Assembly: GCA_002104905.1 (NCBI GenBank)
Contig: MCFE01000452.1
Coordinates: 8,930 to 72,929 of the forward strand
Direction: 5' to 3'
DNA: 64,000 nucleotides
Source: Basidiobolus meristosporus CBS 931.73
Taxonomy: Eukaryota > Fungi > Basidiobolomycota
How positions within the stretch are numbered: position 1 is the first letter of the stretch; each line of letters begins with the position of its first letter. The position numbers were made by a program, and so were the translations under genes. Shown here piece by piece: positions 37,370 to 64,000 of the stretch. A model generated the notes under the pieces. It saw only the letters and a list, made by a program, of their open reading frames with translations, ran no database searches and had not been told where the DNA came from.

Positions 37370-37405
37370 CTTTAGAATAGATTAAGGCAATCGGGGCTCA
37401 TAACC

Positions 37406-37774: not shown

Positions 37775-40700
37775 GAACATCTATGTGCTTAGTTCTGGCA
37801 TGATTAGTAGAACTACTGCTAATGAAAAACAATACTGATTATCTTTGTAAATACATGCTGGTTTATCTGAGTCAAAGCCTGAGTCTTGGAACAATTTCCA
37901 TATCCATATAGCCTCCTTAGTTGCTTGGAAAGCATCCATATATTCAGCTTCAGTTGTAGATAGGGCCACAGTTGGTTGTTTGTTGCAATTCCAGGTAATA
38001 GCTGCACCAGCATAAAGAAATACATACCCATTGGTAGAGTATCTGTCAGTTAGATCTCTACCCAATCTTCATCACTATAACCATCATATTCTTGCCTTTT
38101 AGCTGCTCCAGAGTATTCTAGTACCATTCTTATGGTACCTTGTAGATTTCTGAAAATCTGCTTAACTGCTAAAATTTGATCTGATCCATAATTCTGCATG
38201 TATTGAATGACTTTTCCAACTGCCACTGCAATATCAGGACTTGTAGACACCATGAAGTACATCAGGTTACCAACTATTGATTGATAGAGAAAGTTTTGGT
38301 TCATAATTGAGCTGTTTTCACCTAAAACTGGCTGAGATTTGCTCAATTGTAGATTATTTTCCATGGGGGGAGCTACAGGCTTGCAATTTTCCATTTTGAA
38401 GCATCTAACAATGTCACTGATGTACTAAGACTGATTCAGCACAATTCTTTATGTAAGTATGTCAAAATTCACTTCAATTCCAAGAAAATAGTCCAATTTT
38501 CTAAGATCTTTCATCTCAAACTTGCTTGAGAGATCTGATATTGTCTGTTTAAGTGCCTTCTGGTCACTAATAGCTAATATTAGGTTGTTCACATAAAGAT
38601 CTAGAATGTTCACGCCCTTTTTGAGCTCTTTCACATATTTACTGTGATCTGCGGTGCTACAAATGAGCCCAATCTCCACAAAGTTTGTGTCAATCTTGTT
38701 ATACAATACTCTAGGTGCCTGTGTAAGCCCAAATAGCAGTTACCTGAGTCTGCACACCTTATGGGGACCTTTTGGATAGATAAAGCCTTTTCATTGCGCT
38801 GTATACATTGTTTCTTGCAAATCCCCATTTAGAAAGGCTGTTTTGATGTCCACTTGGTGTAGATCTGGACTGTGTACAGCTGCTAGGGCAAGAACTGTCC
38901 TAATGGAGTAAAACTTGGCAACCAGAGCAAATGTTTCCTTCAAGTCTAGTCCCTGGATCTGGGAATAGCCTTTAGCCACCAGTCTAGCCTTGTATTATTG
39001 ACAGTATCATTGGAGGTTATCTTGATCTTGTAGACCCATCTACATCCTACTAGCTTTTTCCCATTTGGTAAGTTTATAAGTTCCCAAGTTTCTGCTGTGA
39101 TCAGTGATTGGTACCCCTCCTGCATGGCTTGTTGCCACACGGTAGCATCTTGACTTTGCATTGCCTGTTCCTGACTCTGAGGTTTGGCACAAAAGGCAAG
39201 ATAAGCTTCTTCATAATCATTGGATGGCTGCCACCAGGATCCAGGGGCATTTCTTATTCTGGTAGATCTCCTAACTGGCAAAATCAGCTCTGGCCTGGAG
39301 CTGGGAAATTTTCTTATCTATCTGACTGAATTTGGTATATATCTTTTTCATTAGTGTTGATTGCATCACCAGGCAGCTGACCAATGATTTTTGCGGTTTT
39401 CTGGTCTGAATTCTCCTCAAATGCAACATCCCTGCTCTTGATTAGCTTCTGAACTCCGCTATCATACACTCTATACCCATTAGTGTTGTCACAATTTCCA
39501 AGAAATATCTCTTTTCTACTCTTTGGCTCTAGCTTTGAGCAGTTTTTGTCATGAATATGATAAATGACACCACTGCCAAAGATCCTGAGGTGCTGGAGGT
39601 CTGCTTTTTGCCTGTATATGCTTCAAAGGGTGTAATGTCATGTAGTGCTGTTGTTGGGCATCTATTCTTGATGTATACTGTGGTTGCAATAGATTCAGCC
39701 TGAAACTTGTAGCCATTTCCTTGTTATGTAGCATAGATCTTCCCATCTCTACTATTGTTCTATTGGCATGTTCTGCTACCCCATTTTGCTGTGGAGTATG
39801 TGGAACAATGGTCTGTTGAAGTTTACCAGTAGATGAGCAGTATTTTGCAAACCCTTTTGAACAGGTTTCCCCCCCATCTTTGCTTCAGAGTATATTCAAT
39901 TGATACCCAGTTTGTGTTTTGGCCATGTTCTTGAGGTGTTTGATTGTCTCTAAAGACTCATTCATTGTTTTGAGGAAGTATACCCATGTATATCTTGTCT
40001 GGTCATTAATAAAGTCATAAAGTTTCTCTTGGCTTCAAAGACCAGTGTACTCATGGGCCTGCAAATGTCTGAGTGTACAATAGCCTATATTTTGGTGTTG
40101 TTGATGTCTCCTGATCTCCTGAAATGTTACCTAGCTTGTTTGCCATGTGAAAATCCCTTACAGACACTGAATATGATTGGAGTTGAGTAATTTAGGACTA
40201 AAACAAGCTGATTTTTCCCCAATTGGCTCACTTTCTGCTCCCCACTGTGTCCTAGCCTCCTATGTCATGTCCCCCCTTGGTTTCATCAGTTTCAGCAATG
40301 TTGGCATATTCAGGTACAATGATCTTGCATTGCAACTTGTATACACTGTGATCTCTGATTCCCAAAGCTAATTTTTGTCCATTTTAACTCAATATTGAGC
40401 AGTACAGCTTAGTAAGAATAAATATCAGTCCCTGAGCCGTTGCTCTACTGACTTAAAGTAGGTTCTTAGCTATTCCAGGTATGTAGAGTATGTCAGTTGG
40501 TTTTGCTGCAGTAGCTCCTGAGATATCACCCAAATGTAGCAGTATAGACCCACTAGTTGTAGCTTCCAGTTTAGAGTTGTCACTCAAATAAACCTTTTGT
40601 ACACAAATAGTCTTTGAGTTGCTGAACCACTCTATTATACCACCAATATGCTGTGATGCTCCAGAGTCAATATACCATTCACTACTTTGGTTACTTGTAC

Positions 40701-42513
40701 TCTGTTGTACAGTTACAAATATCTGTTCATCAGTAGTCATGTGGTTTGCCTGCTCCAGTTTCTGTTTTTTGTCTGCTTGTTTCTTCTTGCATTTTCTTGC
40801 CCAGTGCCATGGCTCCTTACAGTAGTTACAGCAACCAGGTTTTGTTTGGTTTTGTTGCTTTCCCTTCTTTTCTGTGTGCCTTTCTGTGTTGTATAGAGCA
40901 TTGTCTTCAGTTTTCACTGCTTGATTATCACATCTGAGTTCTTCATGGAGAAGTCTTCCTTTGAAATAGTCTAAAGTCAAATTGTTGTCTGTGCTCTCAA
41001 TAGAAAGTATGAGTGGCTCATACCTGTCTGGTAGGCTGCAAAGCAGACAGACCATCTTTTCTTATCCTCTACACCAGCATTAATACTGTAATGCTCTATG
41101 CAAGTGTCTCCACTCTGGTAATGAGTTGTAGCATGTCATCATCTAGCTTCTTTCTCATGTTGAAGAGCTTTTGTTTTCAATTAAGCTTACTTGATACTGA
41201 CTTTGCTTCAAAGATCTTCTCCAAGGACTCCCATGCTGCTTTAGCATTATTTGAAGCATGGCTTTGACCAATGAAGGAATCTTAGACATTAATATATATA
41301 GCATAAAAGGCCTTTCTTTCCTTCTCTTGAAGCTTTGCCACTTCATCTGCTGTTTCTTTGGGCTCAACTTCTTTCCTGTTACTGTATTTCAAAGCTTTCT
41401 TTCCTCCAGTTGGATCAGCATCTTTATCCTCCAAAGTCCGTAGTTCTTCCCATCAAACCTCTCCTTTACAGGGAATATGTTTGTATTGTTCTGTTTGCTG
41501 GTAGAAGTTATCTTTAAAGTAGGTTAAGGCAGTCAAGGCTCATAGCCTGTTGCAACTTAAAAAGTGATTGTGATCCAAGGAACTTATCAAGACATAGTGA
41601 TGATGGTTGAGCTTTTGTTTATTCATAAAGAGAATCAGTGTTTACACCTTTATAGAAGCAATACAACTATAACACTCAGTAAGGAGGGTTTTGTAACATT
41701 CAGGAGCTTTCTGTAACAGTTGCAGGGTGGTATATAATGGTTGATAAAAAGTGTTATTCTGATCATCACTATAGAGGAATAATTATAGGATCATAAATGT
41801 GAAGAAACTGACAAAGCTGGGGCCACATACTAGTCCTAGAGTGAACAAGACTAGTCCAGAATTGTTAAATAAATTTTTATCTGCTGAATGATGCTAAATA
41901 GTCCAATATTTCAACAGATAAAAGGATCTTATCAAGATATAGTGACAGTAGTTGAACTGTTGTTATTCATAAAGAACCTCAATATTTGTACCTTTGTAGA
42001 AGTAATATAAATGTTACACTCATTAGAGAGAGCTTCTCAACACTGAGGAGCTTTCTGTGACAGCTTCTGGGTTAGTAAATAGTGCTTTGTAAAAGTGCCA
42101 ATTTGATCATGGCTATAGGGGAATATTCAAAGGATCATAAATCTGAAGAAAGTGGTAAAGTCAGGGCTGTAAGTTAGTTCTACAGTCACCAAGACTAAAG
42201 CTGGCTGCTATTAACTCAGTCTCAGTTTATTGTGCATGGGGATAGCTGCAGGCTTGCAATTTTCTGTCTTGAAGCATCTAAGAGTGTCCCTGATGTCCCT
42301 GGACTGATTCAGCACAATTTTACACATTGGTATGTCAAATTTGACTGTAATTCCAAGAAAATAGCTCTGTTTTCCAAGATCTTTCTTCTGAAACTTGCTG
42401 AAGAGATCTGATTTTGTGTGTTTAAGTGCCTCCTGGTCACTTGTAGCTATTATTAGGTCATCCACTTAAAGAACCTAGATCATGACACCCTTATTGGGCT
42501 GTTTTGGATATAT

Positions 42514-45500
42514 TGTTATGATCTGCCGCTTGAATGTTTAAGTTAGATCAGTTTTTAGTCAAATCAGTTAGTATATGTTTAGGTTATCAATATATCAGTA
42601 TTATTTATGAAATCAGCAGCATTAGTCAGCAAATGAATCAGCAGATCCTTTTCAGACAGAAATAGATATACTAAGTAAGATCTTATTGGGTGATGATGAT
42701 GCAATCAAATGAGTCATCAGCCACAACCTACACTAGGAAATACAATTAGTCAGCAATTGATCTGGCAAAATGTATATAAGGAGCTGCTGGAACCTCAATA
42801 AAAATCAGTTCAAGTTTTAGTGAATACAATACTAGCTAAACTCCCTATTCCTCTACAACTCTTATACCAAGACTTGTAACATTGGTAGCAGCAATAACCA
42901 GAAACATCCCTGCTGAAGAAAGAAGAAACCACCCTCAAGATGTTGGACAATCAAGAATGGAAGAATGCCATGCAGTAAATCCTGGCCCAACAGCAACAGT
43001 TACTCCAGATCCTCAGCCAACAGCAACAAGGAATGACAACCATGGCTCAGAGCCAGCAAAGCCCTGTCAAGAGCAACTTTGGTGTGAAGGTCAACCGGTA
43101 CCATGGCAGAGTCAATGAAAACCTGGGAACTTGGCTCTTTCAGATTGAAGAAGCTTTTAAAGCTAAAGGAATTGCTCCAGAGAGCAAGTTGCATTATGCA
43201 GCTTCTTACCTGGCAGATGCAGCCTTACAGTGGTACCACAACAAGATCAGGTCAGCCACTATGATGGGATGCTCTACAATCTCTACCTGGGATGAGTTTG
43301 TGTCGGAAATTCAGGGTGCTTTTGAACCTCCACACCAGCAGACACTACTAAGAAGGAAGTTAATGACACTCAGACGGAAAGGAATGGTTCAAGAATACAT
43401 CTATGAGTACAGATGTCTACTTGGACAAGTTGAAAGAATGGACCCCTTGGATCAAGTTGAGTACTTTATTGATGAGTTGAAAGAAAGTACTTGCAAGGAA
43501 GTGAATTACCAAAGACCTCAGACTATTGAAGAAGCCATCAAGATTGCCATTGACTATGACTCAGCTATGTTTGGAGTTGGGAAGCCTACAGTGACTAATC
43601 AGAAAGGCTACAATCATTATGAAAGAAGACAGTCAGAAGCAGTACCAATGGAAATAGACGCTATGCAGAAAAATCCTACCTCAGAAGAATGTAACAAGAA
43701 AGGACTTTGCTTCAATTGCCACCAGCAGGTACATATTGCAAAGTACTGCCCTCAGAGAAGAAATGGACACCAGCCAACAAGAACCTTCAACAATATTGAG
43801 TCCTATGAACACAGTAATGTGTAAGATGAGCTTGAAGAAGACTCAGAACTCACCTTCCACATGACACAAGAATACCTATCCCAGATGACCTCAAACTCAG
43901 GAAAGCTATTATACTTGAATGGAGTAATCAATGGAGTACCTGCCAAGATCATGATTGACTCCAGAGCATCACATGAGTACATGTCAGAGCAATTTGCTTT
44001 GAAAGCTGGGATCAACTTGGAACCTACCAAATCAACTTCAGTCTCCACAGCTGATGGGAACTCTCACATAATCAACAGTATTACCCAGCCAGTAGGAATG
44101 AAGATCAATGACTATGAAGAAGACCTACAGGCTTTTATATTTGGGAACTGCAAGTTTGACCTTGTACTTGGAAAAACCTGGCTATTTTGTTGTAATCCAT
44201 CAATCAACTGGAGAACCCATGCTACTCAGATCCAAAAAGACAACAAGACCAATGAGCTATTACCTGCTAGGCTGGATTTCAACTTGGTCAATTCTAGTGT
44301 GTGTGAGACAAGTGAACTTAGCAAGACCCGGTTCTGTAGAGCACTTAGAAAAGGTACTCAGATGTTCCTCATGGTGGTTTTACAGGAGGATTCCTCTACC
44401 CCAGCACACCAGCAGGTCCAGACTCTCTTGAAGAAATATTCAGACGTGTTTCCAGATGAGCTTGTAAGCCTACCACCAGTCAGAGATGTGGATCATGCCA
44501 TTGACACAGGAGATAGCCCCCCAGTGAGCAAGACACCTTACAGAATGAGTCCATTGGAATTGGAGGAAATGAAGAGACAAATTGATCAGCTATTGGAGCA
44601 AGGATACATCAGGCGCAGCAAGTCACCCTGGGGAGCACCAGTGCTTTTTGTCAAAAAGAAGGATGGAACACTTAGGATGTGCATTGACTACAGAGCCCTG
44701 AACTCAGTTACCATCAAGAATAAGTACCCCATACCTCAGATTGATGAGCTTTTGGACCAACTTAATGGAGCCACTATTTTCAGCAAGATTGACCTCATGT
44801 CAGGATACAACCAAATTAGGGTGAAACCAGAAGATATTCCTAAGACAGCATTTAGGACCAGATATGGACATTACAAGTACTTAGTCATGAGTTTTGGCCT
44901 CACTAATGCCCCTGCAACATTCATGACGCTGATGCAGACTGTCTTTCAGGAGTACTTAGACAAGTTTGTGGTGATCTACCTGGATGACATATTGATATAC
45001 AGCAAGACAGAAGAGGATCACGTAGTGCACATTGAAAAGGTCTTGGAGAAACTAAGAGAGAACAAGCTATAAGGCAAGCTAGCCAAGTGTGAATTCTTCA
45101 AGGAGCACGTTGAATACCTGGGACACATAGTGACTAGCACAGGAGTGACCTTAGACCCTAAGAAGGTTGAAGTTATGAAGAATTTGAAGCAGCCCAATAG
45201 CATATCAGAACTCAGATCCTTCCTTGGAATGGTTTCCTATTATCAGAGATTTGTCAAGTCTTTTGCAAGTATTGCAGCTCCTTTAACTGATATCCTCAAG
45301 AAAGACAATGCCTACAAGTGGGACATAGCTTGTGAGACTGCCTTCCAGATGCTCAAGAATGAACTTGCTAAGCTGCCAAGCTTAAGAATACCAGACTTCA
45401 GAAAAGAGTTCACTCCGTGCACAGATGCTTCAGATTATGGAATTGGTGGAGTGCTGAGGCAAGAACACAAGGGAAAGGACTACCCTGTTGCCTTTGAGTC

Positions 45501-47451
45501 TAAGAAACTGAACTCAGCAGAACAAAACTATCCAGTCCATGAGAAGGAGATGCTTGCTATTATACACTGTTTGAAGACATGGAGATGCTATAATGAAGGA
45601 GTCAAATGCACTGTGAAGACTGATCATGCCTCCCTCCAGTATGTATTTACTCAGAAGGTACTCTCTAGAAGAATGACAAGATGGAGTGAATACATTCAGC
45701 AATTTGACCTGGAGATTGTCTACTGCCCTGGAAAAAACAACACGGTCGCTGATGCCTTATCAAGATTAGATCAAGTTGCACAACTCAACTTGGTGCATGA
45801 ATCAGATTGGCCAAGCCTATTACCAAAGTACTTGGAGGACCAAGCCATTCCTAATGAGGTGGATGAAGAGATAAAGAAGATAATCCGGGTTGAAGCTAGC
45901 AAATTTGTTGTACAGGATGAAACACTCTACCAAATTGTTGATGGAAGCCCTATTGCCTATTGTCCTTATGTTGCTTGCCTGGATTTAATACATAAGCTAC
46001 ACAATGGATATGGACATCTTGGGATTGAAGGAACCTATAGCCTTGTGAAAGCCAGAGCATGGTGGCCCAGAATGAAACAAAATATTGAGAAGCTAGTGAA
46101 AACATGCCCAAACTGCCAAATCAATCAAGGCCAACCACAAAGAATTGCCAAACTCTTCCCTTTGGAGCCTGTAAGACCATTTGAGAGATGGGGAATTGAC
46201 TTTATTGGAAGACTGCCAACTACCAGGAAATGCAACCTTTGGATCCTAGTAGCAATTTACCATGCCACTAAATGGCCAGTTGCTAAAGCTGTACCAATAG
46301 CCAGTGAACAAGAAGTTGCAAGTTTCATTTACTATGTGATCCTGATGAATTTTGGATGCCCTGTGGAGATCTTATCTGATAGAGGAGCAAACTTTCTGGC
46401 AAAGACATTAGAGGCTTACCTGGAAATGCAGCAGATCAGACACCTGAAAACCTTGGTATATCACCCCAGAACTAATGAAGTCACTGAGTGGTTTAATGGA
46501 TTATCTGGAAAAATGCTGACCAAGTATGCAAATGGAGTTGTCAGTAGATGGGATGAGTATATAGACCAAGCACTCTTTGCATGCAGAGTCAGAGTACACA
46601 ACACCACCCAGCAATCACCATTTTACTTAGTATATGGATGAGAACCAAGGATTCCAGGAGATCTCACACAACCAAAGCTTACAGACACCTTTGAAGATGA
46701 ACTCAGTCAGCCAAGTAGACACCAGCAACTGGAACAAAGACGTCAAGAGGCACAGACCAAAGTATCTCAAAGTGCAGAAAAGATGAAGCAGAGCTTTGAT
46801 AAGACTATAGTACCAGAAGCATTGATAGTTGGGAACTTTGTATTGCTAAGAAACAACACTTGGAAGAAGTTTGAGCCACAATGGACAGGACCATTTAAGA
46901 TCATCAGAGAATGTCCATTTGCAACTTACCAACTGGTGGACAAACAAGATAATATCTGGGAAGACTTAGTGCATAGGGACAGACTCAAGCTTGCAAGACT
47001 TGTTGATAATACTGAACCATCAAGATATTGGTATCACAAGAAAAGAGATTCAGGAGAACCCTCTCAATGTTAGTGGGGGAGAATGTTATGATCTGCAGCT
47101 TGAATGTTTAAGTTAGATCAGTTTTTAGTCAAATCAATTAGTATATTTTTAGGTTATCAGTATATCAGTATTATCTATGGAATCAGTAGCATTAGTCAGC
47201 AAATGAATCAGCAGATCCTTATCAGACAGAAATAGATATTTTAAGTAAGATCTTATTGGGTGATGATGATGCAATCAAATGAGTCATCAGCCACAACCTA
47301 CACTAGGAAATACAATTAGTCAGAAATTGATCTGGCAAAATGTATATAAGGATCTGTTGGAACCTCAATAAAAATCAGTTCAAGTTTTAGTGAATACAAT
47401 ACTAGCTAAACTCCCTATTCCTCTACAACTCTTATACCAAGACTTGTAACA
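42514..47451 (+). mobile_element. full-length Ty3/gypsy element (4938 bp), 4-bp TSD ATAT
   Basis: 368-bp LTRs (42514-42881, 47084-47451) with about 13 differences; PBS TGGTAGCAGC at 42883-42892; PPT AGTGGGGGAGAA at 47072-47083; ATAT at 42510-42513 and 47452-47455. Confidence 0.97.
43033..47073 (+). pseudogene. gypsy gag-pol, single frame with three in-frame stops (gag, CCHC, PR, RT, RNase H, IN, GPF module; no chromodomain seen)
   Basis: CFNCHQQVHIAKYC, IMIDS(R)[46 protein letters not shown]; ORF pieces starting at 43033, 43861, 45130 and 46783 are all in one frame. Confidence 0.95.
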
Positions 47452-47989
47452 ATATACTGTGATCTGCAGTGCAACAACTGAACCCAATCTCCCCCAAATA
47501 TATGTTAATCTTATTATAACATGCTCTGGTGCTTGCTTAAGCCCATTCAATAACTTCTCAAGTGTGCACACCTTATTGGAGCCTTTTGAATCAGTAAAAC
47601 CCTCTGGTTGCTTCTTGTATATAGTTTGTTGCAAGTCCCCATTTAGAAAGGCTGTTCTGATATCCATTTGGTGTGGATCTAGACTGAGTAAAGCTGCTAG
47701 GGCTAGAACTGTCTTGATGGAGTTGAACTTGGCAGCCAGAGCAGATGTTTCCTTAAGGCCAAGTCCCTGGATCTGGAAATAGCCTTTAGCCACAAATCTA
47801 GCCTTGTACTTATTGATGGTACCATTTGAGGTTATCTTGATCTGGTAGACCCCTCTACATCCTATTGGCTTTCTGCCATTTGATAAATCTACCAGTTCCC
47901 ACATTTTGCCCTGATCAGTGATTGGTACTCCTCCTGAATGGCTTGTTGCCACATAGTAACATCTGAACTTTACATTGTCTGTTTCAGAA

Positions 47990-50064: not shown

Positions 50065-50355
50065 TCAGCAGTAGACATCGTTAGGGTTTCTCTTCAACCT
50101 GTCCAACAGTCTTCGTAGTCTTCTCCAGTCTTTGTCCACAATGTAGGCGGGAGCATCCGCTGGGCATTGCAGTTGTGTCTCGCATATAAAGATCACTTGT
50201 CCACGATTACAGAATGCAAGAATCCCATGTTGTCTGAAGATGATTCCTGGATAGTTTCTCGGTGTAAACGGATGACGGCGTGAGGAATTCTCCTGCGCCC
50301 CCACGACAAAGAGCATGGCGATACAAGCAAGTAGTAATGTCAAGATATACTTCAT
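50065..50355 (-). CDS. small secreted Cys-containing protein, subfamily A, copy A1 (96 aa)
   Basis: ATG at 50355 (the track start at 50454 is non-ATG); signal-peptide-like MKYILTLLLACIAMLFVVGA; 4 Cys in the mature part; protein identical to the first 96 aa of A2. Confidence 0.85.
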   Translation of the reverse strand: MKYILTLLLACIAMLFVVGAQENSSRRHPFTPRNYPGIIFRQHGILAFCNRGQVIFICETQLQCPADAPAYIVDKDWRRLRRLLDRLKRNPNDVYC

Positions 50356-50463
50356 TTCAGAATAGAAATTGATGGTTTTTGGAGCTCTTCTCAACGCGAG
50401 AGTATTTAAGGTTTTATGGTGAATCAGCTCCAGCGAATTGAGTATCCCAGCCACCGAGGAAAT

Positions 50464-50474
50464 GAAACATGGCG
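50464..50474. promoter_or_regulatory. conserved upstream motif GAAACATGGCG (also at 57368-57378 and 63979-63989)
   Basis: Exact 11-mer upstream of all three A genes amid diverged flanks. Confidence 0.4.
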
Positions 50475-51798
50475 TTCGTCTAACTCATTCACAAAAGGAC
50501 GCCATGGGTCTTCTATCAAATCAGAAATGGTAGGGTGTGGTGTTCAAAAACCTTTGCAAGTTTAGACAGGTGGCGCACAGTAGAAGCATTAGCAGTCCAC
50601 CACTGGCCCAAAATAATCGCTTATTTTCGTTGTAAAGAAGACAACCGGGATCTCCTGATCCTTCAATATTATATTTAATAATCAGACAGTCGATTTTTGT
50701 CGAATAAGCGGCTTACCGTACTCTGATTGGACCCTTAAGAAAGAAGGCTTGCAAAATGCTAGGTCACCCATGCACCAGCACTGAGCATGAACGAATGTGT
50801 AGATTGTGGCATCTTCTTGACTGTAGAAAAGAGGTTTAAAACAGGCCTGTAGACGAAGTCCTACCTATTTTGAACCTAAAATCCATTCCTAACTAGGTTA
50901 CAATGGGAAGTTGCTGTGAGGTGGAATGAACCATGAGAGATATAAGCTTAAGTCGCGTTTCACTGAATCATCCATGTATGATTCGCGCTGGAAGTTACCA
51001 CCATCAATATACTTAACAAATGTATCAGATTCTAGTTATCGAGCCTCTTCAGGGGCGACAATTTGTAACCATTTTGATAGAATATTTCCGGTCAAGTCAT
51101 AGTATCCACAAATTTCGTTGTCTTACCTGGCTGCGCCGATATGAGCACATCGTCGATCACCGTTAGCAATGTCATCAATATGATTAGTTCAAGGCGTATT
51201 CGACTGCACTGAGCCTGGTAGGGTGAACTCCGTTCAAGTACGTGATTCTATGTTGCGCCATATATATGTATGCTATTGGGGTTGATTTGGAATCATGATC
51301 TGTCAACAGCTGGTGTGGCCATGAGCGATGGCCACTAATTAGAGGTGCACACTTTGTTACTATAGAGCGCATCATTTTTTACATCAGGATCAAACCGTGA
51401 CTTACCCGTAGCAGAGAACTTTTGGTTTGTTGTGAAAGCACTGAAATAACCCGTCCTACCAAGCAGGAAATATTTGTAGGTACTGACAGGATTTTTGGTT
51501 ATTTAGAAGTTTGACTGATAAGCCGCGTAAGCGAATGCACGGTCACGGAAAACAGCCACGTATTTGGAGCGAAAAAACCATTGAGGCCCGATACTGAATC
51601 CATTGATGGTATGACCTTAATGAATCTCTATTGGATTCAATAGGTTTATGGTGGTGAACTCCTACTTTATTTCTGTTGTGTTAAACATCATCCTTCAAAT
51701 ATGTTTCTTACATATTGGTATAACATAATAATATTGCTAAACACTCTGGTTAACCCTTCGTTTCCGCCATTCTCGCCTAACTTCTTATATCGGTCCAC

Positions 51799-52110
51799 TC
51801 AGCGTCTACATTTCCCCAGCTGCGGATTCTTCTTTATTTCGGCAAGTAGCTCCTCGATCTTGCTCCTGTCATTCTCAAGGGTATAGCACCCTGCATCAGC
51901 TAGGCATTGGGCCGATGTCTCAACCAGGAAGATGATGTACCCGTTGTAACAGAGGGCATTTTTCCCGACCTCGTTGAAGATGATTCCCGGGTAGTTTTGC
52001 GGAGTAAACGGATTGCTGGAAGAGTCAGGGCACTTTGTAGAGTATGACTTAGCCTCTCCTACTGTAACTATAGCAGCACAAGCAGCGATAAACGTCAGGA
52101 TATACTTCAT
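51799..52110 (-). CDS. small secreted Cys-containing protein, subfamily B, copy B1 (103 aa)
   Basis: Signal-peptide-like N-terminus; family core NPFTPQNYPGIIF; paralogues at 54989 and 61190. Confidence 0.85.
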   Translation of the reverse strand: MKYILTFIAACAAIVTVGEAKSYSTKCPDSSSNPFTPQNYPGIIFNEVGKNALCYNGYIIFLVETSAQCLADAGCYTLENDRSKIEELLAEIKKNPQLGKCRR

Positions 52111-52719
52111 TTTACAAAGTAATAGGACAGCGCTCTGCTCCTTTTATCGAACTTTTATGGTTTCCCCTTATTATAGAGATTATTTACTACGACATAGCAT
52201 CAAGTGGCTTCTCATTGAAAGTTGTAATGCACACCTCCCTGATACGAACCCCCGACTATTCGAGCGGTGAATAAATTTCCCATGGCACTTTTCTCTCACC
52301 ATTTATGCGGCATGTGCCCTTTTCCTGTCACTACGGGGATACCCCACCATGTACAATCTGTTTTGGCACTATATACAACAGGTTTATTTAAGCCAACTCC
52401 TTCGACCTTATGGCTAGATTAATATATTAATAGATTCATATTATCCAGCCTATTCAATGTGCATGTCACATTTCCGTAGTTTCTCTTGTTTCAACAACCA
52501 TATATAGATCAGCGGTGCTGCATTATTATTATTATAAACCGGACACAACGGAGAAATATTTGAATCGTTCAATTACAACTACTCTTTGTTTATTTTGATT
52601 AATATTTGGCCATTGTTTATTGAGATGATCTTTGTACAATTACCATATTTAGTCGAATTGCACCGAAACTTTATTTCTTGCGCCAATAAGGTTCTACCTT
52701 TAAAGATCACCCTTGGGTT

Positions 52720-52953
52720 TTCTCTCTGCACCACACCTGTTTGGAGTTTCACTTTAAACACATACCCACCAAGTCTTGCATATTTAGATGAACTCTCACA
52801 ATTGCAGAACACATTGAAGCCATTCATCCAAAAGATAATTACCGGGTAGACTCTGGAGTGGGCGGATTACCTTCTGGATGATTAGCTCTCACGCTTTGAC
52901 CAATGGACATCCCGGAAACCAACCTAGGGGCTAAATCGACGCCACCTAAAGCG
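52720..52953 (-). pseudogene. relic of a subfamily C-like gene (D1)
   Basis: Minus strand reads LAPRLVSGMSIGQSVRANHPEGNPPTPE/YPVIIF/MNGFNVFCN...PNRCG with frameshifts and a deletion; CCAAACAGGTGTGGTGCAGA matches the C1 3' end. Confidence 0.65.
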
Positions 52954-53721
52954 ATATGCTCTTACTTATCCTTGTACATTGAATATCAGAATGTATGCGA
53001 GTTAGTTGACAAAATTGGGGATCCTACAATGTCGCGCTTGATTTTCCATGGAATCTGAAGTACACCATTACTACCCACGCTGTACCCCAAGCATACGCAA
53101 AACTTCAATTGCGGTCGTAAAGATGGGGCTGGCTTCTTCACGATAAAAATCTCCGGTCTAAAAATCCTTCACATCCACTGAATGAACTATTTCGAAACAC
53201 CTAGTCTATATATTCAGATGTATTTTGACTATTATGTGGAAGATTCCATGCTTTCGAAAGCACTAACCTCCGACAACGTGAGCATTCCTTTGCTGGGGCG
53301 AAGGAATGGATTTGATGGTTGATCACTGATCTCCAATGCTGTATATACTAGATTCTTAGAACCCCAAGGAATTAAAACGGCGTTAGCCTTATAGATAATT
53401 AACTTTCACATTATAAGGAGAATTGGTAATTGATGGTCCCCTAGGTGGAAACCCAAAATAAGGCAGGAACCTACACCGCATAACTCGGTACTATTAGGTA
53501 ATAGCACATTATCAGTAATCACAACGTTGGTTTCCCCCTTCCAGATTATCATAATTAGCTGGCAAACATATCTTCGAGGACCAACTTCAATACACCGTTA
53601 CATACTTCAGTGAGGTAAATACATGATCATTACTCAGTTTCCATCTTTGGTTGAACTTCGTCAGAACTTTATTTCAGGAGGCAATAATATTTCTCCTACA
53701 TAGGTCACTCGCGCATTTCCT

Positions 53722-54021
53722 CTACTTTCTGCACCACACCTGCTTGGGGTGTCGCTTCAACCTGGCCAACGCCCGTTCAAGATCCTTCCTGTTGAAGTCC
53801 AGAGTGTAGCTTGGGGCATCCGCGAGACACCTCAATGAAGTCTCGCATATGTAGGTGAGCACACCTCGATCGCAGAATACGTTGAAGCCATCCTTCCTGA
53901 AGATAATCCCTGGGTAGTTCTTTGGGGTGAATGGATTTCTGCGTGGAGAATCCGCTTTCGCCCCTTGGCCAAGGCACAGTACGGATATAAAGATAAGCGC
54001 TAGAGCGGAGATGTTCCTCAT
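53722..54021 (-). CDS. small secreted Cys-containing protein, subfamily C, copy C1 (99 aa)
   Basis: Signal-peptide-like MRNISALALIFISVLCLGQGAKA; family core; 4 mature Cys; 2 aa different from C2. Confidence 0.85.
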   Translation of the reverse strand: MRNISALALIFISVLCLGQGAKADSPRRNPFTPKNYPGIIFRKDGFNVFCDRGVLTYICETSLRCLADAPSYTLDFNRKDLERALARLKRHPKQVWCRK

Positions 54022-54988
54022 ACTGGAAGGTGGAATGTTTGTCGAATGCTCGAAAGGCTGACCTTCTTTCTATATTTATGTGATTCTCAATAGCCTCATG
54101 GTGATGTGTTGGCTGATCTATTTGCTGGTCAAGCATACATCGCCAAGGCAAATGAGAAGGGATTCGAGAGCTGAACTGGAAGGGTATAGCCTACAATTTA
54201 ACGCCATCGTGAAGCGCTTAGTAATACCCGCTGAAAGACCTAGTCGTTAGTCATGCGCAGTTTAAGTTTTGGTGGATCCAATCAAAGAGCCTTTTAAGTG
54301 TGCCATCATCAGTGGGTGTAACTCAAACCCGATAATCATTTAAAACGGCGCACTAAGTCACATATTCTGACCAATATAGTACACCTACTCCTACAGACCA
54401 ACAGTTTCAAACCATTTCGCTTGCCATGTACTCATGTGGCGCCTGGGTTCCAATTAGGTAGCAAAGGTGTACGCCTCCTTGGAAATTCAAGACCCATCAT
54501 ATGATGGGAAATCGAGGATCAGTAGAAATAGTGTATAGTTGTTGGCAATATCTCCACAAGTATTGCTACTCTTCGGGTCCAATGGAATAGATCCTACGAG
54601 TGGGAAATCGAAATTCTCGCTGCTTTGTCATTATTTTGCTTTATCTACCTCGGTTAGCCAATAGGTACTCAACTGGGAGAACTTTCTGGCATCTGAACAA
54701 GCAGATGGGTTGTAAGGTCAGTCATGGACCCCTACCACTGTACGTATCATACTCCGGTGCGCACTATTCTAGAAAGCAGAAATGCCATTGGTCTATTCAG
54801 CATCTGTAGGTACGATCTATAGCCGATTTTATGAAATGTTGGAAATCCATCGAATGTGTTCTGTGGCTTTATTTTTGACATTGTGAACAGCATTCGCAGG
54901 TATTGATTGCACATTGGTATTGTATAATAGTATTGCTACATGATCCTGTCAATCATTCATCTTCACCATTCTCATCTGCCTTGCTATA

Positions 54989-55309
54989 TCAGTCCACTGA
55001 GTGTCTACATTTTCCCAGCTGCGGATTCTTCTTTATTTCGGCAAGTAGCTCCTCGATCTTGCTCCTGTCATTCTCAAGGGTATAGCACCCTGCATCAGCT
55101 AGGCATTGGGCCGATGTCTCAACCAGGAAGATGATGTATCCGTTGTAACAGACGGCACTTTTCCCGGCCTCGTTGAAGATGATTCCCGGGTAGTTTTGCG
55201 GAGTAAACGGATTGCTGGAAAAGTCGGAGCACTTTGTAGAGTACGAATTGGCCTCTCCGATTCTAACGATAGCAGCGCAAGCAGAGGCGAATGTCAAGAG
55301 ATATTTCAT
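54989..55309 (-). CDS. small secreted Cys-containing protein, subfamily B, copy B2 (106 aa)
   Basis: Paralogue of B1; residues 54-102 identical. Confidence 0.85.
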   Translation of the reverse strand: MKYLLTFASACAAIVRIGEANSYSTKCSDFSSNPFTPQNYPGIIFNEAGKSAVCYNGYIIFLVETSAQCLADAGCYTLENDRSKIEELLAEIKKNPQLGKCRHSVD

Positions 55310-56889
55310 TTTTTGATGCTGTCATGGCAACGATCTATTCCTTTTATCATGTTCATCAAGCTGTCATAGAGGATAGAGGTAGATGTACACCAGATGTTGT
55401 GATACGGAACTCCCTAATTCTGATATCCGGTTATTTGAGCGGAAAATTTTTTCTTCCGGCTGCTTTAATATACGGACCCATGAGGTGATATGCGGTTTTC
55501 ATTTCCCACTATTCTGTTCACATCACTGGCTTTGAGCGATGTACTTGGGCTTAGCTTAGTAGAAGACTCAAATTTTACCCACACTTGTACCACCAGCTTA
55601 ATAGGGGCCCGGCAGAAATGAAGACTAGTCGTTGCTCTAACCAGTTTAAAGTGATTGTTCCTATTTCATCAATGATGTATGCATCTAAATCTTTATCCTG
55701 GTGTAACATAATCGAGTTTAATGGTATAAAGCTACATCTCCTCAGGCTGGTGAGTATATTTGGGCTACACAAAACTGAGCCCTGGTTCTTCATCCCCATT
55801 GAGATACCAATCAAGGCTATAGTATCCACTGTCTTGGGAATAGGATATGGTTTACCATAAAGAGGTCAGATTTACTCGTCAACTCTTTATCGATTATGGT
55901 TGCCTGTTTCAGTCAGAATCATCATGATTAGTAGGTTGGTATATCCTGTTCTCTATGTACTCTAGTACTATTAAATCTTGACCAAATTTCTGATTTAGGT
56001 TATTCAGAACACCGATGATTTCTAGATTAGCATTCTGAGTTGAAATTTGCCAGCTGGTAAGAGGTGAATTTAGAACCTAATGGAAACAGAATGCCAACCT
56101 TATGACAGAGTAATTTACAATCATTCTCACAGCTTGGTACGATTCAGGGCAAAATAAAGTTTGAGACACTGCACCAATGAATCAACTGAGATATTGCAGG
56201 CTATTTTAAGATTATAAATACATGTATAGGATCTCGAAAAGTTGACTATACATGTATATACATTGGTGAGTTATTTCTGATCCAATAGATTTCTCGTCCA
56301 TCCCACTACGTTCTTTGTCACTAACCATATTTGGTACGTAGGCGCACGCTCAGTTAACAGTAGCAGTGTCAATGTTTATTGAAATCTTGGGATCTATGTG
56401 GGCTGTGTTTCAAAAGTGAGACCTCTGATCACCAGTTCCAGGAATCTATCTGAGTGGCCAGGATTGGAGTACTAAACAGTCGCTTTATTGCAGACATTAC
56501 TTATCGATATTTGTTACACAAGCTTATTGTATCGGTTCACTCAGTGTTCACATTTCCCCAATCAACCCTAACCCAACAGATATATTACCATATATCGTCA
56601 TTTCCCCCTCCCTCCCCCCCCAAAAAAAATACCTACAACTGGACACCACTCCTGCTTTAACGTTGAAAGTCAGGCAAAATTTATTCACCTTCCAGCGTAT
56701 TATTGATCAGGGAGCTTTTCATATTCCACTACCCTGGAACTTCATAAATTTTCATCGGTTTCAGCCATCCGATGAATACCTTACAGGCAAAGCTCTTCCA
56801 TAGATAAACAGATTTATTCTGGTTAAATAATTTTAGAGCTCTCTTCAATATGGCTGAACAGAAATTTTCAATAACTTTAGACTAGTTCG

Positions 56890-57258
56890 TCAAGGCGATA
56901 CCTCACTTTGCGAATCTGACGTTGCGTCGCCTGGTCTGGATGGAGGCCATATTACCTGATTCGAGGACCTGCAGTAAACATCGTTAGGGTTTCTCTTCAA
57001 CCTGTCCAACAGTCTTCGTAGTCTTCTCCAGTCTTTGTCCACAATGTAGGCGGGAGCATCCGCTGGGCATTGCAGTTGTGTCTCGCATATAAAGATCACT
57101 TGTCCACGATTACAGAATGCAAGAATCCCATGCTGTCTGAAGATGATTCCTGGATAGTTTCTCGGTGTAAACGGATGACGGCGTGAGGAATTCTCCTGCG
57201 CCCCCACGACAAAGAGCATGGCGATACAAGCAAGTAGCAATGTCAAGATATACTTCAT
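56890..57258 (-). CDS. small secreted Cys-containing protein, subfamily A, copy A2 (122 aa; 26-aa C-terminal extension)
   Basis: Identical to A1 over 96 aa, then reads on through RSSNQVIWPPSRPGDATSDSQSEVSP. Confidence 0.85.
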   Translation of the reverse strand: MKYILTLLLACIAMLFVVGAQENSSRRHPFTPRNYPGIIFRQHGILAFCNRGQVIFICETQLQCPADAPAYIVDKDWRRLRRLLDRLKRNPNDVYCRSSNQVIWPPSRPGDATSDSQSEVSP

Positions 57259-59916
57259 TTTAGAAGTTTAGGTGATGGTCAGTGAGAACGCTTCTGAAAG
57301 CGGCTCTTTTAAGGCTTTTGCGGTAAGCTAGCTCTGGAAAAAGCAGTGTTCGAGCCCTAAAGGTCATGAAACATGGCGCTGTGAGTTCGTGACTTGTTAT
57401 TCAACCCATTCGCACAACGACGCCAGGAATTTTTCACCAAATCAGAAAGGATACTGGATGTGGTGCTCAGAAACTCTTGTGATTTTAGACTGCTGACACA
57501 CGATAGAAACATCAGTAGTCCATTACTGGCTCAGCTCAGGCGCTCATTTTCCTTGTAAGGACAATTTCTAGAGTCTCTTCATCTAACGATAATATATTTA
57601 GTAGCCAGTGTTAACTTTCATGGAGTGAGTAAGCTGTAATACTCCAATTGGGTCCTTGACAATGAGGCTTGCGACATGCTAGGTCATCAACAAGCAAGCA
57701 CCCTGATCACAAACGAGGATGCTGAATTGGACATGCACTGGACTAGGGAAGAGGGACTCCGAGCAGATCTGTAGACCGAAGCGTATCTTAAACTCTAATC
57801 GACCCAAATATGGTGCACCTCACAAAATTACCAAGGGACTAGATGCCTAGGAGAAGCTGAATGCCCCATGGTAATTGTGCTCAAGAACCTAAAGAAATAT
57901 AAGCTTAAATTGGGTTTTACCGCCTTGCGCCCACATCTGATTCATACTTGATGGTGCTACCACCGACACAGAATGTCTCAGTTTCAGATACTCGCTACCG
58001 AATCTCTTCAGGGGCGACAATTTGTAACCATTTTGATAGAATATTTCCGGTCAAGTCATAACATTCACGTATTTCATTGTCTTACATGGCTGCGCCAATA
58101 TGAGCACATCGTCGATCACCGTTAGCAATGTCATCAATATGATTAGTTAGCAGCCATGCTCAAGGCGTATCCGATTGCACTGCACTTGGTAGGGTGAACT
58201 CCGTTCAAGTATGTGATTCTATGTTGCGCCATATATATGTATGCTATTGGGGCTGATTTGGAATCATGATCTGTCAACAGCTAGCGTGGCGATGAAAGAA
58301 TTCGATTCATTAGAGGTGCACATTTTGGCTCTAATGCTATGAAAACTGATTTACGATCATCTTCAGTTAATGGATGGTGTAGTACACATCAATACATTAA
58401 AGACGCGTTGCTCAGACACTATAGTACATATCAACATTTCCACTAGCAGCAGGTCTCGACTCTCATATAGCAGTATGATCCTCATATTTCATGAAAACAC
58501 CTTGTCAAACAGTCTTACCAGATCAGTAAGATACCACTTAGCTTGGATTGCGGTATTGAATCCTAGTAGTACTAAGCAGAACTATTAAATCTCATAGTAT
58601 CATCTGTTGTATTAGAAAAACATTGGCTAATTTATTTGAGACTTTTCAGGAATGGGTATCCTGCTGACGTACAGTAGATGCACTGTTCGTTTGCTGCCCA
58701 GTGGACGTAAGTGAGCCTGAAGAATTTCTGTTTTCAAGTGTCATCCATGGTCTCTCGTCGAATAGGTAGACTGCAGCGGAATAATTGGATGTTTGCATAT
58801 CGCTCCACTTCGTCCAAGGATGACCATATCTCCTTTGGAAACGTTAAGAATAGTTTGAACCTTGCAACCCAAGTGCATGGTATACTGAGTAGGCCACTAG
58901 GTATGTTGAGCTTACATCTAGTGACTCATGCATTCTGGCTCCTAATTTTGCCAACCCACTCCCATCCATTCAAATGCTCAATGGATTGATACCATATAGT
59001 ACAGTGACTAAACCGCCTCAATCATATCAACCGGCGCAACCATTGGTCACTCCATTGATATACCTTCTGAAGCAACCTTCCCCCCTACCTTGAGTTTGAC
59101 TTACTAACGGATAATTTGTGTTTTATAACGGAATTCTCGGTCCAGAAATTATCAGTTAGCTGAGGTTGGAAACAGCGTTGCTAAGATGTTGAATAAACTG
59201 TTTTGCACCACATAGGACATGTATCTAGGAGTATACTCACTGTGAGATGGGAGATTCTACGCTCAAAGAAGCATTATCCTCTTCCCCCCCCAACAACAAC
59301 AACAACCAATGGAGCCCGGGTTTTTGGTAAGCACTCCTAAGCGAGAATGAACGAATGAATTACCAATGCTGTATGTTTCATACATTGGTCTACTAGAATT
59401 CCGTAGAATGGAAATAGCGTAAGCCCAACAGATATCTGACTTACATGACACCAGAAGCCTATTTCCCCGCTTACCAAGAAAGTTCTTGAGCAATCAGAGG
59501 GTGGTGTGTATACAGCCATTAATATAAATATAGCAGGATTGTTTTCCCAGTCTTCAATTACATTTGGTATAGTCAGATTGATATTTTCGGGCTAGGTAAA
59601 GCGGTACTACACACCTTGCTTCATCATGAATAGTTCCTGACCAACCACGTGGTTGGTTGTGGATAGGAAAACAGCATTACACTGATTTCTCTGCCGCATA
59701 ATTAATAATGTAACATCAGCCATAATAACAATGGCATCGACTGCTATGATTAGATGACGAGTGCGTCTGTGGCGAACACTTTTAGTCCACCATTACATAC
59801 TTCAGCGAGGTAAATACATGATCATTACTCAGTTTCCATCTTTGGTTGAACTTCGTCAGAACTTTATTTCAGGAGGCAATAGCCTTTCTCCTACAAAGAT
59901 CACTCGCGCATCTCCT

Positions 59917-60216
59917 CTACTTTCTGCACCACACCTGCTTTGGGTGTCGCTTCAACCTGGCCAACGCCCGTTCAAGATCCTTCCTGTTGAAGTCCAGAGT
60001 ATAGCTTGGGGTATCCGCGAGACACCTCAATGAAGTCTCGCATATGTAGGTGAGCACACCTCGATCGCAGAATACGTTGAAGCCATCCTTCCTGAAGATA
60101 ATCCCTGGGTAGTTCTTTGGGGTGAATGGATTTCTGCGTGGAGAATCCGCTTTCGCCCCTTGGCCAAGGCACAGTACGGATATAAAGATAAGCGCTAGAG
60201 CGAAGATGTTCCTCAT
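59917..60216 (-). CDS. small secreted Cys-containing protein, subfamily C, copy C2 (99 aa)
   Basis: Paralogue of C1 (S5F, A69T). Confidence 0.85.
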   Translation of the reverse strand: MRNIFALALIFISVLCLGQGAKADSPRRNPFTPKNYPGIIFRKDGFNVFCDRGVLTYICETSLRCLADTPSYTLDFNRKDLERALARLKRHPKQVWCRK

Positions 60217-61189
60217 ACTGGAAGGTAGAATGGTTTTCGAATGCTCGAAAGGCTGATCTTCTTTCTATATTTATGTGGTTCTCAATAGCCTCATGGTGAT
60301 GTGTTGGCTGATCTATTTGCTGCTCAAGCATACATCGCCAAGGCAAATGAGAAGGGATTCGAGAGCTGAACTGGAAGGGTATAGCCTACGATTTAACGTC
60401 AAAGTATAGTGGAGCACCTAGGAGCACTCTCTATAAGACTTGGGGATTGATCACACATACTTCAAGCACTGGTATATCCAATAGAAAGGCCTCACATTGG
60501 TGTCATCGTAAGTGGGGCGTAATACAAAAATAACCTCCATACTAAGGATCACATAAGGTTTTCTATTGTGACCGATTGGAGACTTCTAATTCTACGACCC
60601 AACAGTTTCAAACCATTTCGCTTGCCATGTACTCATGTGGCGCCTGGGTTCCAATTAGATAGCAAGGGTGTATGCCTCCTTAGAAATTCAAGACCCATCA
60701 TATGATGGGAAATCGAGGATCAGTAGAAACAGAATAAAGTTGTTGGTAATATCTCCACAAGTATTGCTACTCTTCGGGTCCAATGGAATAGATCCTACGA
60801 GTGGGAAATCGAAATTCTCGCTGCTTTGTCACTATTTTGCTTTATCTACCTCGGTTAGCCAATGGTTACTCAACTGGGAGAACATTCTGGCATCTGAACA
60901 AGCAGATGGGTTGTAAGGTCAGTCATGGACCCCTACCACTGTACGTATCATACTCCGGTGCGCACTATTCTAGAAAGCAGAAATGCCAGTGGTCTATTCA
61001 GCATCTGTAGATACGGTCTATAGCCGATTTTATGAAATGTTAGAAATCCATCGAATGTATTCTGTGGCTTTATTTCTGACATTGTGAACAGCACTCGCAG
61101 GTATTGATTGCGCATTGGTATAGTATAATAGTATTGCTACACGACCCTGTCAATCACTCATCTCCACCATTCTCATCTGCCTTGCTATA

Positions 61190-61510
61190 TCAGTTCACTG
61201 AGTGTCTACATTTTCCCAGCTGCGGATTCTTCTTTATTTCGGCAAGTAGCTCTTCGATCTTGCCCCTGTCATTCTCAAGTGTATAGCACCCTGCATCAGC
61301 TAGGCATTGGGCCGATGCCTCAACCAGGAAGATGATGTATCCGTTGTAACCGACGGCATTTTTCCCGGCCTCGTTGAAGATGATTCCCGGGTAGTTTTGC
61401 GGAGTAAACAGACTGCTAGAAGAGTCAGGGCACTTGGTAGATTACAGCTTGACTTCTCCAACTGTAGTAAGGATAGTACAAGCAGCGATGAATGTCAAGG
61501 AAAATTTCAT
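61190..61510 (-). pseudogene. subfamily B copy B3, nonsense codon just after the signal peptide
   Basis: MKFSLTFIAACTILTTVGEVKL*STKCPDSSSSLFTPQNYPGIIF...GKCRHSVN*; same length as B2; Cys54 replaced by Gly. Confidence 0.85.
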
Positions 61511-63624
61511 TTTCTGATGCTGACATGATGTCGATTTGTTCCTTTTATTGGGTCTTCCTGGTGGTCCCAGAGATACATGCACACTAAATGCTTCAACACA
61601 GAACCCCCTGATTCGAATTCCCAGTGGTAGATGATTTTCTTCAGTTGTACTAATATGCGGATACTTCTATAAGAGGGGTGGGTTTGGAGTGTGACGTTTG
61701 TTTACCCGATATTCTGTTCTCACCACTAGCTTCTAAGTAAATTTACTGGCAGCTGTACTATCGACGCAATAGGAGCTTGGCAGAAATGAACATTATTCAG
61801 TATACCAACCGGTTTAGTATCATTACACCTCCTTTACCATATGCTCCTAGACTCTATGGAGGGTTCAATGATCAGGCCCATGCCCCCGTCATTCAATAGA
61901 GCTAGAAGACCTCGTCACTTGACGTTGTGTGTGGTTAGACCATATGAATCATCAGCAGTATGCTTAGTAGGGGTAAAATATTCGCTGTCTTGGGAACATG
62001 GATATGATTCAGCTTCTATTTGATGCGATCAGATATACTCATTCACCATTCATGATGAGAATTTCCAACCTGGAATCTTTGCTGGGATAAAATCATGTGC
62101 TGCCAATTTTGTTAGAAAGACAGCGTTTTGACATCATAACTGGTGAATGAAATTTTGCATGGGGACCTAAATGAAGGGACATAATTGAATACAGTTCCTA
62201 ACCTTGTAAATTTTATTCAGGTTGGACTTTTGCTGATATTGATATGGTACTCTGATTTAGTATAGTGACTACCTTATATTGATAGTACAACTTTTGTTAC
62301 ACAGGTACCAATCCAAGAAGTGAGCGGAACTTGGAATCTGGTTGAAATTAGATTCTGGTGACAGAAGGCAATTGGTAATTAGCTATTACATCTCCAGTCT
62401 AGTACACATTCAGAATGGAATAAGTTTTGAGGCTGGATAGCACTGGGCCTGCTAGGGCAATACAGACCACAAATGATATTTAGAGCTTTCTGTAGGCATG
62501 TGTTGCTGGGTATCTAATTTTCTAACAGCAATTTTTCATGAAAATTGGTAGGGCATATATCTTTTGACATGGGTGATCATACTTGGGACATGGATATTTT
62601 TAGGTACATGAATGTGTCGACTATCCGTATTTCAAGTTGCTCCAAGCGCACTCTTCCCAGTATAAGTGAACTGCTGAAACCTACCTATTTCAGAATACCC
62701 ACTTTAACTCTATTCATATCTGGTATAAAGATGCACACAGTTACCACAATAGTGTTGAGACCATGATCCTTGGATAGTTTGGCTGATTAAACGAATGGCT
62801 GCAAGGTTCAGTGATGAATGTCAGGAGAGGCTTCCTTTTCGGATGTCGACTATCCAAAGCAGAATTTGTGAAACATCTCCCTCAATGCATAAGTGTTCCG
62901 TGCTGATTTTACAGCGGCATTAATATGAGGGCACTTCCAACTATTACCTGGTTCTTTTCTAGACATATCAATAGACCTTTATTCATGCGCTATTTGATTC
63001 GGGCCCTCTTCTATAAGCACGCTGATCGCCAAGAACTTTCCAGTTGAATGTTCGTGTAGGGCTTGAAGTGTAATGGGCAATAGACTGACACATCAAGCTA
63101 TATGATATATCACTTTCATTGGCTTTACCTTTACCTTTCTTCCAGCGTGATCGATACTTGGCCACATGGTTTGCAACCGATTCTTATCCAATGACTACAA
63201 TGAATAAGAAACCATACCCCCCACTCGCCTCCTCCAAGATAGCCATAACAGGATTGATTTGACATTCAAACATTAATAATCAGTCAGGATATTGTCCTTA
63301 CGGCGCATTAAAGCCCAATGACGTCCTTGTATACTATATTTTTATCATTCATTGGAAAGGCCTGCTACACTGGAACGTTGGGAACTTCAATCTACTTTGT
63401 ATGTCCCGTTTCCGCCGGAAACAACCTCCAAGTAACCCAATGAAAGATATTTTCAAGCAATAGATGTATTTATTCTGGTTACATTATTTACTATCCCATC
63501 ACAGAATAGCCGAATAGAGATAGCATACATACTTTGACTGGTTTGACAGGATGAGAATCTGACGCAAACGCAATCTCACCTACCTAGATGGAGGCTAGGT
63601 TACCTCCTTGGTGGACTCGACTCC

Positions 63625-63916
63625 TTAACAGTAGGCATCGTTAGGGCTTCTCTTCAACCAGCCCAACAGTCTTTGAAGTGACCTCCGGTCTGTACCCACG
63701 ATGTAGGTGAGAGCATCAGCTTGGGCATCGCAACGACGTCTCACATATAAAGATGACCTGTCCACGATAACAGAAGGCAATAATCCCATTCTGTTTGAAG
63801 ATAATTCTTGGGTAGTTTCTCGGTGTGAACGGATGGCAACGTGAGGAATTTTCCTGCGCCCCTACGACAAAAAGCATGGTGGTACATCCAAGAAGCAGTG
63901 TTGGGATATACTTCAT
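63625..63916 (-). pseudogene. subfamily A copy A3, +1 frameshift after CP
   Basis: One extra A (TGC CCA A GCT GAT); the shifted frame continues ADALTYIVGTDRRSLQRLLGWLKRSPNDAYC*. Confidence 0.85.
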
Positions 63917-64000
63917 TTCAGGATTTTAACTGATAGTCGGTGGGAACTGGGGCATAGTGCTCTAAGCATTTGGGTCGTGAAACATGGCGTTGTGAGTCCG

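Follow-up and report, generated by a model that had tools for sequence, protein, structure and literature searches.

Lineage-specific arrays of small secreted protein (SSP) genes lying beside transposons are a familiar kind of locus in fungi. Their products are small, have a signal-peptide-like N-terminus, form disulfides and lack Pfam domains, and the genes expand in tandem and evolve by birth and death. The classic arrays are those of plant pathogens, which evolve under diversifying selection, and uncharacterised SSP orthogroups have also been catalogued in zygomycetes (PMC9391592). Another described group of this kind is the Hce2/Ecp2 superfamily (PF14856), whose members are small secreted fungal proteins of about 100 residues with four cysteines. 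Here we have analysed a stretch of 64,000 nucleotides from Basidiobolus meristosporus CBS 931.73 (hereafter the window), which carries at positions 50065-63916 a tandem array of genes for small cysteine-containing proteins. Basidiobolus inhabits the guts of amphibians and reptiles and is also a cause of human and animal disease, and to our knowledge almost nothing is known of the molecules that it exports.

The Basidiobolus array resembles the SSP arrays in the small size of its products, in their signal-peptide-like N-termini, predicted disulfides and lack of a Pfam domain, and in its tandem expansion, birth-and-death evolution and transposon neighbourhood. It differs from the classic arrays in showing purifying selection and gene conversion, and in belonging to an animal-gut associate. 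We consider it rather probable that this is a functional, selectively maintained array for small, predicted-exported and disulfide-stabilised proteins, found in Basidiobolus only and having an extracellular binding role. Our confidence in any particular binding target is much lower.

An array of short family members

We have searched the whole window by tblastn with the six intact members of the array as queries. Nine family copies were found, all on the minus strand, and no copy was detected in window positions 1-50000. A prediction made earlier from the sequence alone (the original prediction) had described nine co-oriented, intronless genes in the order A1-B1-D1-C1-B2-A2-C2-B3-A3, with B3 and A3 as pseudogenes and D1 as a relic, and the searches agreed with this layout. 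Every copy is a single open reading frame (ORF), the homologous long-form genes described below also being single-exon, and the stop, the frameshift and the two-frame fragments of the broken copies were all seen. The copies, with protein lengths in amino acids (aa), are as follows.

50065..50355, minus strand: A1, intact short-form gene, 96 aa from the inner ATG; mature part basic, 4 Cys
51799..52110, minus strand: B1, intact short-form gene, 103 aa; mature part near-neutral, 5 Cys; public annotation P0002
about 52722..52934, minus strand: D1, decayed C-like relic; tblastn E about 1e-4 to C1/C2
53722..54021, minus strand: C1, intact short-form gene, 99 aa; very basic, about +9
54989..55309, minus strand: B2, intact short-form gene, 106 aa; annotated as P0011
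56890..57258, minus strand: A2, intact gene, 122 aa; annotated as P0001
59917..60216, minus strand: C2, intact gene, 99 aa; 2 aa differ from C1
61190..61510, minus strand: B3, pseudogene; in-frame stop near codon 24, Gly in place of an invariant Cys
63625..63916, minus strand: A3, frameshift just after SLRCP, leaving two overlapping ORF pieces

Six of the nine copies (A1, B1, C1, B2, A2 and C2) are intact. The listed ORF of A1 has 129 aa and begins at an upstream GTG, the 96 aa being counted from the inner ATG, and its stop codon lies immediately 3' of the codon for the C-terminal Cys. The first 96 aa of A2 equal A1 and are followed by a 26-aa extension. Past the usual family end (about 56949-56960, minus strand) the A2 frame runs into AATCAG/GTAATA, which resembles a 5' splice donor and which the annotated 122-aa model reads through. 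Three-frame translations resolved D1 into fragments lying in two different frames and interrupted by stops, with part of the interior deleted.

In the six intact proteins 27 columns are invariant, among them those of PFTPxNYPGIIF, ET and AD and of three Cys, so that the core motif proposed in the original prediction is real. The P-x4-C ending proposed with it stood for A and C only; B ends in P-QLGK-C. The predicted contrast between strongly diverged subfamilies and near-identical copies within them was also found, with identities of about 37-52% between subfamilies and, within them, of 100% over 96 aa (A1/A2), 98% (C1/C2) and 88% (B1/B2).

The window is the terminal part of contig MCFE01000452.1, whose end lies 84 bp beyond A3, and the array thus runs into the contig end. 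Window positions 49381-62112 are 98.3% identical to L001:1-12730 on scaffold 9 (MCFE01000009.1) of the same assembly. The array region is therefore present twice in the assembly, either as a second haplotype or through segmental duplication in the very recent past. Three further copies prolong the array on scaffold 9.

L004:736-1026: E, intact diverged acidic member, 96 aa; about 58% identical to A
L004:2172-2459: broken A-like copy
L004:3332-3622: counterpart of A3, an intact 96-aa ORF

The stop of B3 is common to the window and scaffold-9 copies, and the frameshift of A3 is present in the window only.

Long forms, selection and gene conversion

A profile of six window proteins was searched with HMMER hmmsearch against 1.84 billion representative proteins. 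Seven proteins matched at E <= 1e-10, all from B. meristosporus or Basidiobolus ranarum, and a second, wider profile search gave 12 matches, again all from Basidiobolus. The original prediction had proposed searching protein databases and fungal proteomes for relatives, and these searches returned Basidiobolus matches only. Two distant matches were rejected: P0008 is a mammalian protein of 93-aa repeats in which the six residues TPENYP recur 31 times, and was judged spurious, and P0009 had an hhalign probability of 0.4%. At the level of sequence, the searches showed the family to be restricted to the genus Basidiobolus.

The relatives include a long form of the protein (P0003-P0007 and P0013-P0018; among them ORX99119.1, ORX99116.1, KAK9702300.1 and KAK9761318.1), all annotated as hypothetical. 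Long forms matched the short-form profile across the core with E values of 2.7e-23 to 2.5e-12, and in an alignment of 18 sequences F/T/P/N/Y/P/G of the FTPxNYPG segment, two Cys, one Gly and one Asp were invariant. Both forms also share signal-like N-termini, a single exon and a tandem arrangement. The long forms have about 130 aa and carry after the helix a 37-residue tail (NGNEVWP...FPHRVDP...KDWPGKG..ATC) that ends in Cys. In the alignments, the conserved tail segment FPxRxDP...KxWPxKG..ATC and the fourth Cys are missing from the window copies, which end 6 residues past the helix; A2 keeps a weakly alignable remnant, namely its 26-aa extension. Tail-coding DNA was not detected by tblastn anywhere in the window, indicating that no second exon had been missed downstream of the short forms. 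Lacking the long-form tail, the window copies thus make up a truncated subfamily.

The long-form genes are single-exon. In B. meristosporus as in B. ranarum, tandem groups of 2-4 of them adjoin PhoD and COG4 (L002:1-12456 and L003:1-12633). This synteny across the two species points to a stable ancestral locus. Additional P0005-like copies, outside the called genes, were seen in L002 at 2033-2422 and at its start.

A branch supported at 91/88 set the nine short forms apart in a maximum-likelihood tree, and among them B branched first, then C, then E and A. Long forms with the tail and the PhoD-COG4 locus occur in both species, whereas the tail-less short forms were found in B. meristosporus only, having been sought outside it among annotated proteins only. 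These data are consistent with a single truncation event behind the short forms, so far in B. meristosporus alone. The original prediction had overlooked this relationship, by which the window genes are a C-terminally truncated, derived branch of a family of about 130 aa.

We have then investigated how the copies evolve. Comparing A1, B1, C1 and C2 with their scaffold-9 counterparts gave, when pooled, 11 synonymous and 7 nonsynonymous differences, against an expected nonsynonymous share of 77% (p = 5e-4). For B1/B2 omega was 0.28 (p = 0.004). The coding sequences of A1 and A2 are 99% identical, with 3 synonymous and no nonsynonymous differences, whereas their 5' flanks are about 60% identical and their 3' flanks unalignable; the jump in identity lies exactly at the borders of the coding sequence.

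C1-B2 and C2-B3 lie in two copies of one duplicated block (53593..55347, 90% identical to 59788-61548). Within it the C1 and C2 coding sequences are 98.7% identical, compared with 87.5% for the spacer, and the dead B3 matches the B2 coding sequence at 88.1%, that is, at the spacer rate (87.5%). Near-identity limited to the coding sequence is a signature of gene conversion. Coding-sequence-limited conversion is thereby shown for A and is probable for C, and this confinement of near-identity in A and C had not been noted in the original prediction. The homogenisation of A1 and A2 is a clear-cut case of such conversion within a young array. Taken together, the substitution data and the comparisons of coding sequence with flanks and spacer show live genes under purifying selection, duplication of a C-B block and gene death.

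Protein features and possible function

By a simple hydropathy reading, each N-terminus begins with a short charged stretch, which is followed by a hydrophobic core (11-residue Kyte-Doolittle mean 2.1-3.2) and by small residues at -3/-1, with putative cleavage at VGA/Q, GEA/K or GQG/A. With these signal-peptide-like N-termini, which the original prediction had also recognised, the family proteins may be secreted. With 96-122 aa, 4-5 mature Cys and no Pfam domain, the window proteins have the size, Cys content and domain status of candidate effectors. In A and C, an arginine pair (RR) immediately precedes the invariant motif and could be a dibasic processing site.

Two cysteines, Cys29 and Cys44 (mature P0003 numbering), are invariant across the 18 sequences and presumably pair with each other. 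The long forms have a second set, made up of the loop Cys50 and a Cys close to the tail's end. B retains Cys50 and has a new Cys at its truncated C-terminus, together with a fifth Cys near the N-terminus, whereas in A, C and E Cys50 has been lost and two cysteines have been gained, one in strand 3 (position 38) and one at the C-terminus. In the alignment, this pattern suggests that a disulfide was rewired once the tail had been lost.

We have performed family and fold searches to relate these proteins to known ones. A Pfam-A hmmscan of five long forms gave no family even at E <= 10, and the six short forms yielded no more than two matches at E <= 1, both of them sub-threshold and unrelated. 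The profile search of PDB sequences returned only de novo designed proteins and a borderline TBP match, judged to be due to chance. The latter (PDB 1mp9, E = 0.044) aligned a PxxYPGLIxK segment with both repeats of one archaeal TBP. The TBP repeat does resemble the family locally, having a PxxFPGLIfR motif followed by a beta-meander at similar spacing. However, the TBP fold runs S1-H1-S2-S3-S4-S5-H2 and the family has no S1-H1 equivalent before the motif; moreover, the Basidiobolus protein is predicted to be secreted and disulfide-bonded. Since no other TBP in the PDB matched at E <= 10 and no chain of the TBP fold reached Z >= 2, we have rejected a TBP-like fold.

AlphaFold modelled mature P0003, using the 18-sequence alignment, with a predicted local distance difference test score (pLDDT) of 80.8 and a predicted template-modelling score of 0.72. 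The model has antiparallel strands at 19-22, 25-30 and 33-40, a less confident Cys loop, a short strand and a helix at 57-70, followed by a mostly irregular tail (pLDDT 79-85). Foldseek found nothing in the PDB at E <= 0.001, and re-ranking of its list by VIA left nothing at Z >= 2; VIA-align against 48,161 representative chains gave a best Z of 2.5. In the ESM Atlas the best match to P0003 had a template-modelling score of 0.38 by shape and a score of 0.76 by features, the latter below a meaningful level. The fold searches with the long-form model agreed, as did the Pfam and PDB searches, with the original prediction, in which no known family could be assigned. The family is undescribed and may have a new fold; no mention of it or of its accessions was found in the literature searched. 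No enzyme-typical residues are conserved between long and short forms in the 18-sequence alignment; the long forms, for instance, all have His in C-x-H-G, where the short forms have Arg or Asn.

On the surface, conservation is highest in the N-terminal FTPxNYPG segment and in the Cys/Asp loop, and for this reason we favour an extracellular binding protein that acts on other organisms. The ancestral form would have had about 110 mature residues, arranged as a three-stranded beta-meander, a Cys loop and an amphipathic helix, with a 37-residue tail folding back on this core and ending in Cys, and its genes would have stood in the PhoD-COG4 neighbourhood. The branch represented in the window has lost this tail, with a new Cys 6 residues past the helix in every member and, in A, C and E, a new strand-3 Cys replacing the old loop Cys. 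It has multiplied by tandem duplication next to the transposon island and has been shaped by gene death and by gene conversion limited to the coding sequence, its subfamilies now differing strongly in net charge. The proteins would act outside the cell on gut microbes or on the animal host, and the invariant segment and loop would form the conserved functional surface.

We have weighed this reading against other explanations of the same data. The proteins might be extracellular structural or developmental material of the fungus itself, such as wall, spore surface or the adhesive of its sticky capilliconidia, which would suit a long-form locus that is syntenic between species among housekeeping genes, and selection that is purifying rather than diversifying. 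We regard this as unlikely, because the proteins appear compact and folded around a specific invariant motif, are neither low-complexity nor repetitive, have no glycosylphosphatidylinositol signal, wall-anchor signal or repeat, and differ widely in charge among subfamilies. The last point bears as well on the proposal that A and C, being basic, serve as cationic antimicrobials or killer proteins against gut competitors and act through an arginine-rich amphipathic helix (DKDWRRLRRLLDRLKR in A, RKDLERALARLKRH in C). Mature A and C do have net charges of +5 to +9 (pI, the isoelectric point, 9.4-9.9), and the habitat is gut-associated (PMC9391592). Yet B is near neutral and E acidic, so that the short subfamilies span -4 to +9; among the long forms net charge runs from -9 to +10, several of them, like B and E, being neutral or acidic (-9 to +1). 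Since it varies across B, E, A, C and the long forms, charge is not a family trait. Moreover, it is the N-terminal motif and not the helix that is most conserved, and neither Foldseek nor VIA-align found a likeness to a known antimicrobial fold, leaving this proposal distinctly improbable.

Membership of the Hce2/Ecp2 effector superfamily, or of the RlpA-like double-psi beta-barrel proteins, is suggested by automatic names in UniRef, where P0003 is an "Ecp2 effector protein domain-containing protein" and P0005 an [quoted passage not shown]. These names conflict with each other even though the two proteins are 49% identical, and our searches reproduced neither of them. Pfam-A gave no match for the long forms at E <= 10, PF14856 was not matched by the short forms at E <= 1, and the P0003 model is a beta-meander with one helix and not a six-stranded double-psi barrel; furthermore, no barwin, expansin, cerato-platanin or RlpA chain reached Z >= 2 among the 48,161 chains. 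We thus give this assignment very little credence. The same holds for the view that the ORFs are non-functional and belong to a decaying repeat that the transposon island has brought with it, as the broken and the unannotated copies might suggest. Against such decay, the six ORFs have stayed intact in each of the two assembly copies, nonsynonymous changes are significantly fewer than expected, homologues are conserved in two species at a syntenic, non-transposon locus, and C1/C2, unlike the dead B3, do not evolve at the spacer rate.

Several results nevertheless weigh against the extracellular binding array that we favour. Three of the nine copies (B3, A3 and D1) are dead. The exact products of C1, C2 and A1 are absent from a collection of 15 billion protein sequences, as are those of E and of the scaffold-9 counterpart of A3, and these genes thus appear to be unannotated in the public genome. 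The lack of conservation of net charge speaks against assigning the whole family a simple cationic antimicrobial mechanism. The AlphaFold model of A1, built from 6 sequences, was unusable (pLDDT 49.6), so the short-form structure is taken only from the long form. Finally, the Pfam, PDB and fold searches tie the family to no target or activity. The original prediction had attributed the window to a fungus, which is borne out by exact look-ups that match its proteins to entries of B. meristosporus CBS 931.73, and had likened the locus to effector or toxin loci; its interpretation as a whole is partly supported.

More tentatively, and as a possibility to which we give limited weight, one early-diverging genus might have evolved a new fold, and the window array might record its recent remodelling, in which rewired disulfides made up for a lost C-terminal clasp and new extracellular agents against gut microbes or the vertebrate host arose. 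It is similarly doubtful, though conceivable, that these agents would be the basic A and C, the neutral B and the acidic E. For now the family is one of many uncharacterised SSP families. Being without recognisable relatives in sequence or predicted fold, kept by selection and having a clear history from long to truncated form beside transposons, it offers a tractable start for studying how new secreted proteins arise in early-diverging fungi.

Surroundings of the array

Window positions 1-48000, upstream of the array, form a dense transposon island, in agreement with the original prediction that the array lies beside one. Pfam identified copia, Ty3/gypsy and tnp2 elements there.

33451..47952: transposon island adjoining the array, strand not assigned; Pfam matches with E 1e-83 to 1e-10
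33451-37026, 40453-41055 and 47380-47952: copia-type ORFs (gag/integrase/reverse transcriptase)
2304-3314: further copia-type ORF
43033-46641: Ty3/gypsy element, gag and pol
6043-6738: tnp2 transposase fragment

Upstream of the A genes two further features were observed. An element of 344 bp, 87% identical between its two copies, lies upstream of A1 (51013-51356) and A2 (57981-58327), 650-1000 bp from the ATG, and has no further occurrence in the window. This element, which is separated from the A1 and A2 genes by DNA of only about 60% identity, could be regulatory and conserved, or else some small feature not yet recognised. In addition, the exact motif GCCATGTTTCA occurs about 60-120 bp upstream of the ATG in A1, A2 and A3 only.

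50463-50473, minus strand: GCCATGTTTCA upstream of A1
57367-57377, minus strand: GCCATGTTTCA upstream of A2
63978-63988, minus strand: GCCATGTTTCA upstream of A3

Instead of this motif, the B and C genes have the TATA-like ATAAAAGGA and CATAAATATAG, which lie nearer to the ATG.

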